Notes: generated by a model from the letters alone, not told the origin. Shown: positions 4,001 to 7,000, counted from the first letter of the stretch. The stretch is 64,000 bases of DNA from Salpingoeca rosetta (GCA_033442325.1 JAWQFM010000007.1:997684-1061683); one strand, 5' to 3'. Numbers and translations are program-made.

Positions 4001-7000
4001 TGCTGCTAGGGATACTGGGCGAGGACTGGGCGACGGGTGTGCGTGGGGTCATTGCTGCTGAAGCGGCGTCAAAGGAGGTTGCAGGCGGGGGTGAAGGCGG
4101 CGTGCCCCACGGGATATCAGGGGCCTTTGGGCTGCTGCTGCTGGGAGGCTCGGCGCGGCCGGTGCCCAAGGGGGGCGACACCACCATCTGCGTTTGGAGC
4201 TCCGTCACACGAAACAACTCCTCAAAGCGGTCCTTGAGTCCACCGAGCTCTGCCGTGAAGTCAGTTCGCCAGCACCACATGTGCACGCGAATGCCTTTCT
4301 CCAGGGCGTCCGTGGCAACGGGGACAAAGAACAGGCTGTCTGAACCGCCGCCGGGGTTGACAACAAGCACAAGCTCGGTGGAGTTAGACTTGAGCTGCTC
4401 CAGCCAGCGGCGAATGCGCGCGTCTGGGCGAATGCCCTTGTAGCCGATGCGATTGTAGCGGTTTCGAAACGTATCCAGGAGCTCAAAGTGGTGGCGGTCC
4501 TCCAAGCGCTCGCGGATGTCGTTGTCAAAGGACGGAGCAAGGCTGGCAATGCGTTCGCCGGGATCCACCCCTGCAAGCACATGGCGCATCAGGTTGTCTG
4601 TGTCCACGTCCACGTGGTAATGCTTCTGCTTGTGCGCGCCAGATGCCACGGCTGTCATGTCGACATACACCATGGTTGGCGGAAGTGCTGGTGGTGCGGG
4701 CGGTGATGGTGCGGGCGGTGGCAACCCGACATCCGCCGCTGCCCACATGTCAAAGGGGTCCGGCTCAAGTGCCTGGTCCGGCACCGTGGACAGCGCGGGC
4801 GGGCCGGATGCCAAAGCTGGGCCGGTGCTGCGCAAGCGCGTGTGGTACTCGCGCAGCTCCAGGTCCACCATGGCCATGCTCGCGCGCAGGGTTGGCTGGT
4901 CCACCTCCCCGGTGACGACGTGGTACAGGAACGTGGGCTTGAGCTGGCGCGGGCGCTGCCGAAACCCGTCGTCATCAAAATCAAAGAAGAGGGAGTAGCA
5001 GAAGGCCGGGTGCGGCTTGGGCGCGCTGGAGAGGAAGCGACAGTGGTGGACGTCCGCGCTCTCGGGCTCATACCGCGTCTCGTCCGTGACCAGCATCACC
5101 GAGCTGTCGTAATAAGCCGTCTCAAACAGCAAAATGAACGTTTCCTTCCCAGCGGGGAGCGGGTGCTCCGTGAAGTTTGGGCACGGCCACGCGTACACGC
5201 CGTTGTTGTCGAGCGGGCTGGTCGGGTCGCGCTGCTGCTCACGCGTGAGCCCGTTTGCACAGAGATCAACGGCAGCCGTAATCGTGTCGCACAGCATGAA
5301 GTATGCCTTGCGTTTCACCTTCTTCGCCCCTGCCTGCACGGCTGCAGACTTTGCCCGCCTTCGAGCGGTGGCTTCCAGGTCCTCCAGCTTGAGGTTCCAC
5401 TCTGCCTCAAACACCGGGTTGTCAATCCTTGCCGCAGACACAATGCTGACGGAGGGGCCGGCGCGGTCAAGGTACTCCTGCAGCAGCTTCACCGCCTCCA
5501 TGTGCTGGGGTGTGCCCTTGAATAGGTGGTCAAGCCGCGTTTCCACTTGCGGCTCCCGGCTTTCCAGGTCCGCAGCGCCCTCGGCAGCAAGGGTTGTGAT
5601 GGTGGTGGGTGTGGAGGACACATGCGGGCCGCGTGGCTCGGGCGACGGCGACGAGGAGGGAGAGCGCCGGCGGTGCCGCTGCTGCTTCCGCCCAGTGCAC
5701 CTGCTCAGTGGACTATCTGTTGCTGCTGCTGCTGCTGCTGCTGCTGCTGCTGCTGCTGCTGCTGCTGCTGCTGCTGTTGACATAGATGATGAGCCACGGC
5801 GGCGCCGCGTGCCAGGTGATGGGTTGATATCGCCCTTCTTTGTACTTGGCGCTCCTGCACCCCAGCCCAGTGATGCCGAAGCCGCTTCTCTCTTGACACC
5901 ATTGCCACCGTCAATGCCGCTGGCTTTAGCCGTGCTGGTGGTACTTGCGAGTCCCCAGCCGCTTGTGGTGGTGGCCGTCGTGCTGTTGCTGCTACTGCTA
6001 CTGTTGTTTGCGCCTGCAGCTCCCCAGCCACCACTACTCACGTTTGATGGTCGCGGCGATGACGGGGATGAGATTGAGGAAGCAGATGTCGGTGAGATGC
6101 CCCACCCCGCAGCGAACGAGGTAGTGGTGGTGGTGGTGGTGGTGGTGTCGGAGAGGGATCGTGGTACGGACGGCAGGGGTGGGTTCTTGTTTCGAGAAGA
6201 CCGTGGCTTTGCAGCAGGCAGTGTGGAACGAAGCTTGTCCATCCCCTGCAGCAAATCGAGCTTGCTGCGGGCTGATGTGGCTTTCTTTGTCCTGGTCTGT
6301 GCGGCCGCTGACCTCGATGTTGACCGCAGGGAGCCCGTGCTCGATGCTCGTGTTTTTGTAGTTGGCGCGCTGGATCCGTCCAAACTCAAGCTGAGGGGGC
6401 GGGTGCGCTTCGGCGTTGCCTTGACTGTACCCGCGAGGCGAGGGTCCCGCAGCGCCCCCTTTCCCTTGCCGCCCATGCTCTTCTTGGGTGGCTTCCTCGT
6501 GGCGGTAACGGCACGCTGTGAGGACTTGGGCATCACAATCACGTCATCATCATCGTCACTGCTGCTGCTGATGATGGCAGGCTTGAAGTCTTTGTCCTTT
6601 GCTGCATCTGCCTTCTTGCTGGTGTTGAGCGCGCGAATATCGTCGTCGTCGTCGCTGCTGCCGTCACTGTCGTCAACGAAGCGGCTCTGTTTCTTTGACC
6701 CTGATGGCGGGGCAGAGGTTGTGAGCTTTGGGCGCTTTGGCTGGTTGCCGCTGCTTCTTGCTGACGACGTCGATGTCGGGGCTGTGGTGGACGTGGTGCT
6801 GCCGCTGCTGCTCGCTGATGTGGCTGATGTCGAGCTGTTGACGGTTGCTGGTGGTGTGGAGATGTTTGCCTGAGCGTTGCGGCGCTTTGCGTGCTTTTTC
6901 AGAGCGTGCTCGAATTCGTATACCTTCTTTGCTTCTCGCTTGTTGAGGTAGCGCTGGGGCACCCATTTGGGCTGGATGCGCGGGCCGTAGTCAAAGTGGT

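Follow-up and report, generated by a model that had tools for sequence, protein, structure and literature searches.

In TASOR, the pseudo-PARP domain has no catalytic activity, is required for silencing and shows only weak binding to single-stranded RNA. The pseudo-PARP of TASOR and TEX15 is essential for the human silencing hub (HUSH) and is interchangeable between the HUSH and the Piwi-interacting RNA (piRNA) pathways. A DUF3715 domain, as in TASOR, is expected to have an occluded pocket, with a closed D-loop and a tyrosine on a short helix as a plug, and to bind neither NAD+ nor benzamide. HUSH is independent of small RNAs, and its chromodomain is supplied by MPP8. Here we analyse a gene of Salpingoeca rosetta that encodes a chromodomain and a PARP-like domain in the same protein chain. 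The gene lies on the minus strand of a 64,000-nucleotide stretch of DNA (GCA_033442325.1 JAWQFM010000007.1:997684-1061683), which we call the window. Coordinates are window positions unless they are marked as open reading frame (ORF), protein, domain or 6TL1 chain residues, where 6TL1 is the TASOR structure. We consider it likely that protein residues 578-786 form a highly diverged PARP/ADP-ribosyltransferase fold without the His-Gly pair that binds nicotinamide adenine dinucleotide (NAD), in other words a pseudo-PARP that serves as a binding module and not as an enzyme.

TASOR keeps Y217 as its only active-site residue, and its histidine position is occupied by L184 (Douse 2020). Among the PARP-domain proteins compared in the same study, for example ZAP and RCD1, the loss of at least two NAD+-binding residues accompanies catalytic inactivity. 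In TASOR-like proteins the DUF3715 domain is followed directly by SPOC and DomI (Schopp et al. 2023, PMC10578480). The same paper places the origin of DUF3715 in early eukaryotes in its abstract and in a figure title, and in early metazoans in its text.

The initial annotation proposed that the S. rosetta locus encodes a TASOR/TEX15-type pseudo-PARP of the DUF3715 family outside animals. Every peptide that it quoted is found in the same minus-strand ORF at 4911-5537. The domain and the parts of it on which our argument depends are the following:

4911-5537, minus strand: the likely PARP-fold domain, the subject of this report (ORF residues 533-741, protein residues 578-786).
5346-5537, minus strand: N-terminal strand-helix-strand-helix unit, the sole part with a robust alignment to PARP catalytic domains (phmmer, model confidence, MAFFT).
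5283-5309, minus strand: strand KAYFMLCDT at the position of the PARP x-F-H-G-T strand; hhalign and MAFFT alignments A1, A3, A5 and A6 set C-D-T under H-G-T.
5187-5207, minus strand: N-N-G-V-Y-A-W, which keeps the tyrosine of the G-x-G-x-Y-F-A strand; the Y column is invariant in alignments A1, A3, A5 and A6.
4911-4988, minus strand: C-terminal signature common to the domain and TASOR (Smith-Waterman), consisting of an FFDF strand, a 13-residue linker with R-Q-R-P-R-Q-L-K-P and the last strand TFLYHVV, predicted at domain residues 203-211.

Three independent lines of evidence agree on a PARP. First, a phmmer search of 177,635 PDB sequences returned PARP10 catalytic domains as the only matches (E 0.006, 19.5 bits, domain residues 4-67). 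The N-terminal 64 residues carry this match, and two weaker collinear pieces lie further along. Within the N-terminal unit an R-I-D-N ... W motif corresponds to R-V-Q-N ... W-x-x-Y of PARPs, and the unit is aligned identically in all five MAFFT alignments. Second, when atlas clusters are ranked by protein-language features, PF00644 accounts for 61 of the nearest 100, and scores rise to 0.95. The ten best named matches all come from one family or clan, and once PARP clusters are taken out the next atlas families are other ADP-ribosyltransferases with low scores. Third, hhalign aligns the domain to a PARP profile over 138 collinear columns (P 0.01). This profile contains 24 sequences: 23 mono-ADP-ribosyltransferase PARPs and the query, a PARP of the same genome.

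Predicted structure adds to the picture. The alignment given to the structure model contained the N-terminal halves of PARPs only. Domain residues 1-65 are modelled with a predicted local distance difference test (pLDDT) of 80-88, and strands 135-142 and 203-211 were placed without guidance from the alignment. The order of secondary-structure elements fits PARP topology, the unguided half included. PARP-type domains make up all of the best 50 Foldseek matches, and a shape search of the atlas returned PARP clusters in all 10 rows but one, which holds an unnamed cluster.

Several results weigh against a PARP fold. The structure model is poor overall (mean pLDDT 54, falling below 50 over domain residues 100-127 and 146-203), and a single-sequence AlphaFold model has a pLDDT of 32. 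The model was built on an alignment of PARPs, so that the fold search is predisposed to find them. All 50 matches listed by VIA-align are PARP-type domains (Z 7.5-8.6, 124-156 residues aligned), but Z values of 7-8 lie within the range that, according to the tool, can reflect a common arrangement and are not decisive alone. One of 100 shuffled proteins also attains the atlas score of 0.95. Neither PF00644 nor the DUF3715 model PF12509 matches the domain or the whole ORF in hmmscan, even at E≤10. PF00644 has 37 matches in the genome (55.4 Mb, 68 contigs searched), none of them at the domain's locus, and the domain has no paralogue there. An exhaustive phmmer search found no homologue among 1.84 billion representative proteins, hence conservation cannot be shown. 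Word-index searches and metagenome scans for homologues of the domain found none either. Finally, the middle and C-terminal halves are unstable against PARPs: five MAFFT runs with 10-24 PARP sequences gave five solutions, which disagree past the first 120 residues, and hidden Markov model pieces of the PARP C-terminal half score below 0 on the domain.

If the likeness to PARPs arose by chance in a fast-evolving, lineage-specific globular segment, the domain would not be a PARP fold at all. The missing Pfam match, the C-terminal half that cannot be aligned, the low confidence of the single-sequence model, VIA-align Z values below 9 and the high-scoring shuffled protein would all fit this view. 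We nevertheless judge it improbable, given that the phmmer match to PARP10, the language features and the collinear hhalign alignment agree independently, and that even the unguided half follows PARP topology.

For the C-terminal half we kept the alignment that accommodates all nine strands, which is inferred from topology and not from statistics. Two other MAFFT pairings were rejected, since neither would accommodate the strands that remain. One sets YYDS..VMLVT..RYEPE against YDSV..VYMVY..AYPE of PARPs and the other sets TFLYHVVTGE against the FLARVLVG strand.

The same genome encodes a range of other PARP-like frames. Its reference PARP (G000:C31:302666-306127, L004) is a 670-codon frame with an ordinary PARP10/14-like catalytic domain. 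By eye, macro-like and WWE-like parts lie ahead of the PARP domain, and the best relatives of this frame combine Macro, WWE and PARP. At least 12 near-identical intronless ORFs of 370-405 codons (L016-L031, on contigs C2, C13, C20, C24, C25, C27, C28, C32, C33 and C34) show a weak PARP match and an intact W-H-G-C ... G-I-Y ... F-E-E-Y-V-V pattern.

The absence of the PARP HG motif, as first annotated, is borne out: the strand KAYFMLCDT contains no histidine. Cys-Asp lies under His-Gly in the hhalign alignment and in four of the five MAFFT alignments. When the strand is anchored on SYAFLMVD of TASOR instead, the histidine position is taken by Met, so that neither placing yields a histidine. The NAD-binding His is replaced by Cys (or Leu or Met) and the Gly by Asp, and the G-V-Y tyrosine remains. 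Probably lost as well are the second tyrosine (Pro or His) and the glutamate (Ser or Tyr at its position), a call that depends on the C-terminal alignment chosen by topology. The H-Y-[EILV] triad with its His-Gly contact to NAD+ is not present in the domain; in the topology-consistent alignment its third position would be Ser or Tyr. What the domain does have is a degenerate NAD+ site on a PARP fold, with the equivalent of Y217 as the only site residue retained. This is true of other pseudo-PARPs too and is therefore necessary, not diagnostic, for DUF3715.

Judged from these residues, the domain is very probably not an enzyme. One could argue that it is still an active ADP-ribosyltransferase with a non-canonical NAD+ site, since the G-V-Y tyrosine is retained and some mono-ADP-ribosyltransferases function without the glutamate. 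This we consider highly improbable: the His-Gly pair is missing in every alignment, and the loss of at least two NAD+-binding residues goes with inactivity (Douse 2020).

Concerning descent, the head of the domain resembles PARP10-type mono-ADP-ribosyltransferases in sequence, and its tail carries a signature that, among the sequences compared here, only TASOR shares. Over its last 26 residues the domain aligns to 6TL1 chain residues 177-206 with a Smith-Waterman score of 43, a value attained by 3 of 5000 shuffled versions of the domain (P ~6e-4). In this alignment FFDF, the R-Q-R-P-R-Q-L-K-P linker and TFLYHVV pair with FYEY, the R-R-R-P-R-H-V-C-P linker and YAVVS of TASOR (chain 183-206). 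Both proteins share a long linker before the last strand with the pattern [DE]-x-[LF]-R-x-R-P-R-x-x-x-P, and the signature sits at the equivalent place, in the last two strands. From strand to strand the linker measures 14 residues in TASOR and 13 in the domain, and 6 of the 13 linker positions are identical. In the 24 PARP sequences the length is 5-7 residues, which makes the domain's linker about 8 residues longer than that of the profile PARPs.

Ordinary PARPs score at most 28 for this signature (the 24 profile sequences and 7 PARP-like ORFs of the genome), and a background of 128,533 residues does not exceed 34. Against the TASOR C-terminus, scores of 39 and 42 are reached by two ORFs of the window that are unrelated. 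In pairwise terms the C-terminal match to TASOR corresponds to about E 0.02, which is suggestive and not proof. The initial annotation had listed a series of TASOR motifs, most of which can be traced. The 23-residue C-terminal string is exact (6TL1 chain 182-204), and LLEKEFTEKRREL, SYAFLMVD, ICEKGL and LGSPSMGVY occur in the order given (chain 46-108), but NPLDTG and VVIFK were not located. The 23-residue string matches no other solved PARP in the PDB.

This signature raises the question of whether the domain is a true DUF3715/RDTS member, closer kin to the pseudo-PARP of TASOR and TEX15 than to catalytic PARPs, in a family that would reach back at least to the choanoflagellate-animal ancestor. 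Such kinship would refine our reading of the domain as a pseudo-PARP and does not exclude it. The order of the signature, its near-equal linker length and its score argue for kinship, as do the non-histidine residue at the histidine position and the sole remaining G-V-Y tyrosine, both as in TASOR. A chromatin-reader protein in an organism that lacks Argonaute also fits a HUSH-like pathway that does without small RNAs.

In the core of the domain the resemblance to TASOR is at chance level: chain 71-108, the core of TASOR, yields a score of 24 (P 0.22), and ordinary PARPs reach up to 32. Neither the whole domain nor its C-terminal half nor its last 46 residues retrieves TASOR from the PDB. A profile built from the domain and the TASOR 23-mer retrieves 6TL1 through the seeded motif only and does not extend, so it gives no independent support. 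PF12509 is silent on the domain, as reported above, and a six-frame search of the whole genome with this model gave no candidate, in a search that control genomes could not validate. Nor is the domain followed by SPOC-DomI, the hallmark of TASOR-like proteins; next come a Pro-rich linker of 73 residues and another globular part, and a putative SPOC at the far C-terminus is without support. A TASOR-like set of domains therefore cannot be counted as support for kinship. Hence, of the original proposal, the PARP-type fold, the lack of His-Gly and the non-animal host stand, whereas membership in DUF3715 finds no profile match. We regard kinship with DUF3715 as possible, though short of probable.

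Comparison of structures does not separate TASOR from its catalytic relatives. VIA-align does match 6TL1 (Z 7.8, 15% identity), and over 154 residues, the most among the nearby matches. Yet TASOR is tied with active PARPs and with ZAP: PARP12, PARP14, PARP10, ZAP and TASOR all fall at Z 7.8-8.6, and identity is highest to PARP10 (17-19%). Taken region by region, the C-terminus favours TASOR (43 against at most 28), the core matches PARPs equally or better, the N-terminus matches PARP10 only, and the structural scores overlap (Z 7.8 for TASOR, 7.5-8.6 for catalytic PARPs). The best matches overall are ordinary PARPs, namely PARP10 by sequence and PARP Pfam clusters by language features and shape, a result that tells against the first assignment.

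These matches lead to a second account of descent, in which the domain is a mono-ADP-ribosyltransferase of the PARP10/12/14 type that lost its active site independently and whose TASOR-like tail is due to convergence or chance. PARP10 and its relatives PARP12, PARP14 and PARP15 have the same order of secondary structure as the domain, and PARP10 provides both the strongest sequence similarity (19.5 bits net over 64 residues) and the highest structure-based identity. The neighbours by language model and by shape are PARP10/12/14-like clusters. Moreover, the genome holds dozens of PARP domains (the 37 PF00644 matches) as a possible source, and pseudo-PARPs have arisen several times (Douse 2020), for example ZAP/PARP13, PARP9 and plant RCD1. 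ZAP/PARP13 (2X5Y, tied in structure at Z 8.1) and RCD1 are, like the domain as we read it, inactive PARP folds used as binding modules. Their partner domains differ from those found here (CCCH zinc fingers and WWE in ZAP, WWE and RST in RCD1), and no specific sequence similarity to them was found.

Independent loss has its own difficulties. PARP10 is an active H-Y-I mono-ADP-ribosyltransferase, whereas the domain has Cys-Asp for His-Gly, has probably lost the second tyrosine, and has the longer last linker and no PF00644 match. No similarity to the genome's own PARP ORFs was detected. The long C-terminal linker with its TASOR-like motif is missing from all PARPs tested, and the ranking of the fold search is biased by the PARP alignment used in modelling. 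We treat independent loss as a tentative explanation, plausible but below even odds in our judgement. That the DUF3715 family predates animals, as the initial annotation concluded, cannot be drawn from this locus; nor would it be new, because an early-eukaryote origin of DUF3715 has already been stated (PMC10578480).

The domain is part of a spliced and transcribed gene. An uninterrupted minus-strand ORF of 2026 codons (1053-7133) forms part of its exon 3. Two GT..AG introns, at 7140-7749 and 7867-8194, are supported by RNA contigs and stranded RNA reads. The stranded reads further show that minus-strand transcription spans the PARP-like domain, with coverage over 4200-7139. Joining 8206-8195, 7866-7750 and 7139-1056 on the minus strand gives a coding sequence for a 2071-residue protein whose only stop codon stands at the end. 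The coding exons and two further globular parts are as follows:

8195-8206, minus strand: coding exon 1, which encodes Met-Ala-Asp-Glu, then a GT donor; RNA contig X4 contains the joint 7865/8194 (cut +1).
7750-7866, minus strand: coding exon 2, 39 codons with the N-terminal half of the chromodomain (Pfam Chromo PF00385); both flanking introns are RNA-confirmed.
1053-7139, minus strand: coding exon 3, with the remainder of the chromodomain, disordered linkers, the PARP-like domain, two further globular parts and the stop (ORF, spliced coding sequence, RNA).
4179-4673, minus strand: globular part after the domain, first annotated as NYN/PIN-like, not confirmed.
1056-1553, minus strand: C-terminal globular part, first annotated as SPOC-like, not confirmed.

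The chromodomain is confirmed by a Pfam match on exon 2 alone (PF00385, E 2.2e-10), and the start of exon 3 completes it. Ala, Gly, Ser, Thr and Pro account for about 60% of the residues in both long linkers. A GCN repeat just N-terminal of the PARP-like domain (5711-5787, minus strand, ORF residues ~450-475) codes for a run of about 19 Ala. Past the globular part that comes after the PARP-like domain, a long run of Arg-Asp dipeptide repeats is followed by Arg-Gly-Gly repeats (~3300-4100, minus strand, ORF residues ~1010-1275). By analogy, this stretch would be a typical low-complexity region for RNA binding or self-association, reminiscent of the arginine-rich region of Periphilin.

Like TASOR, then, the S. 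rosetta protein sets a PARP fold without the catalytic His, and with only the G-V-Y tyrosine retained, in a large, mostly disordered and putatively nuclear protein tied to chromatin reading. It differs from TASOR in the missing Pfam DUF3715 match, in the lack of specific core similarity and in the absence of SPOC-DomI after the domain. It differs from HUSH in that the chromodomain sits on the same chain. We propose that the domain would act like the TASOR pseudo-PARP, as a non-catalytic binding module. The protein may serve as a scaffold in the nucleus, where its chromodomain would read methyl-lysine and the linkers rich in Arg-Asp and Arg-Gly could contact RNA.

A bolder version of this proposal is that the gene is a single-chain forerunner or analogue of animal HUSH in an animal relative without RNA interference. 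An MPP8-like chromodomain, a TASOR-type pseudo-PARP and RNA-binding, Arg-rich linkers like those of Periphilin would share one polypeptide, and silencing of this kind would predate animals and would later have been split into subunits. We think this unlikely. If it were true, small-RNA-independent, transcription-coupled silencing around a pseudo-PARP would be older than animals.

The protein also contains 21 Trp-Gly (WG) motifs, all in disordered linkers (1720-6110). Reading them as Argonaute hooks was rejected for S. rosetta: a six-frame search of the genome finds no Piwi domain, and the species is reported to lack both Argonaute and Dicer (PMC6040629), which makes an Argonaute-hook role unlikely. 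As a speculation, the WG motifs might meet other partners with tryptophan pockets, such as CCR4-NOT. A Pre-SET search also gave no match, but it lacked a working control and carries no weight. A HUSH-like reading of the protein fits better than one modelled on RNA-induced transcriptional silencing (RITS), because HUSH does not depend on small RNAs.

What is new here is a pseudo-PARP fused to a chromodomain, with a link to TASOR that we regard as possible, though at less than an even chance. Among the papers searched, none names both TASOR and choanoflagellates. If the domain is a TASOR relative, it would provide a distant sequence for finding conserved features, and the R-x-R-P-R linker would be the one to examine first. 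Pseudo-PARP and chromodomain would also be joined in one chain, in a genetically editable organism that lacks Argonaute. If instead its activity was lost independently, the gene is a further example of a chromatin protein that has put a PARP fold to new use as a binding module, a result of modest interest.

The two other globular parts of the protein did not bear out their first assignments. For the part at 4179-4673, taken as NYN/PIN-like, there is no Pfam match at E≤10, no relevant PDB match and no metagenome relative. For the part at 1056-1553, taken as SPOC-like, there is no Pfam, PDB or usable atlas match, and a six-frame search of the genome with PF07744 misses the locus. Outside the coding sequence, microsatellites occur in both introns and in the 5' flank (7190-7405, 8036-8100 and 8415-8465): about 110 bases of (TC)n in intron 2, about 65 bases of (CA)n in intron 1, and (ATC)n upstream. 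The mapping of RNA reads left out these microsatellites and the repeat encoding the Ala run as repeats.

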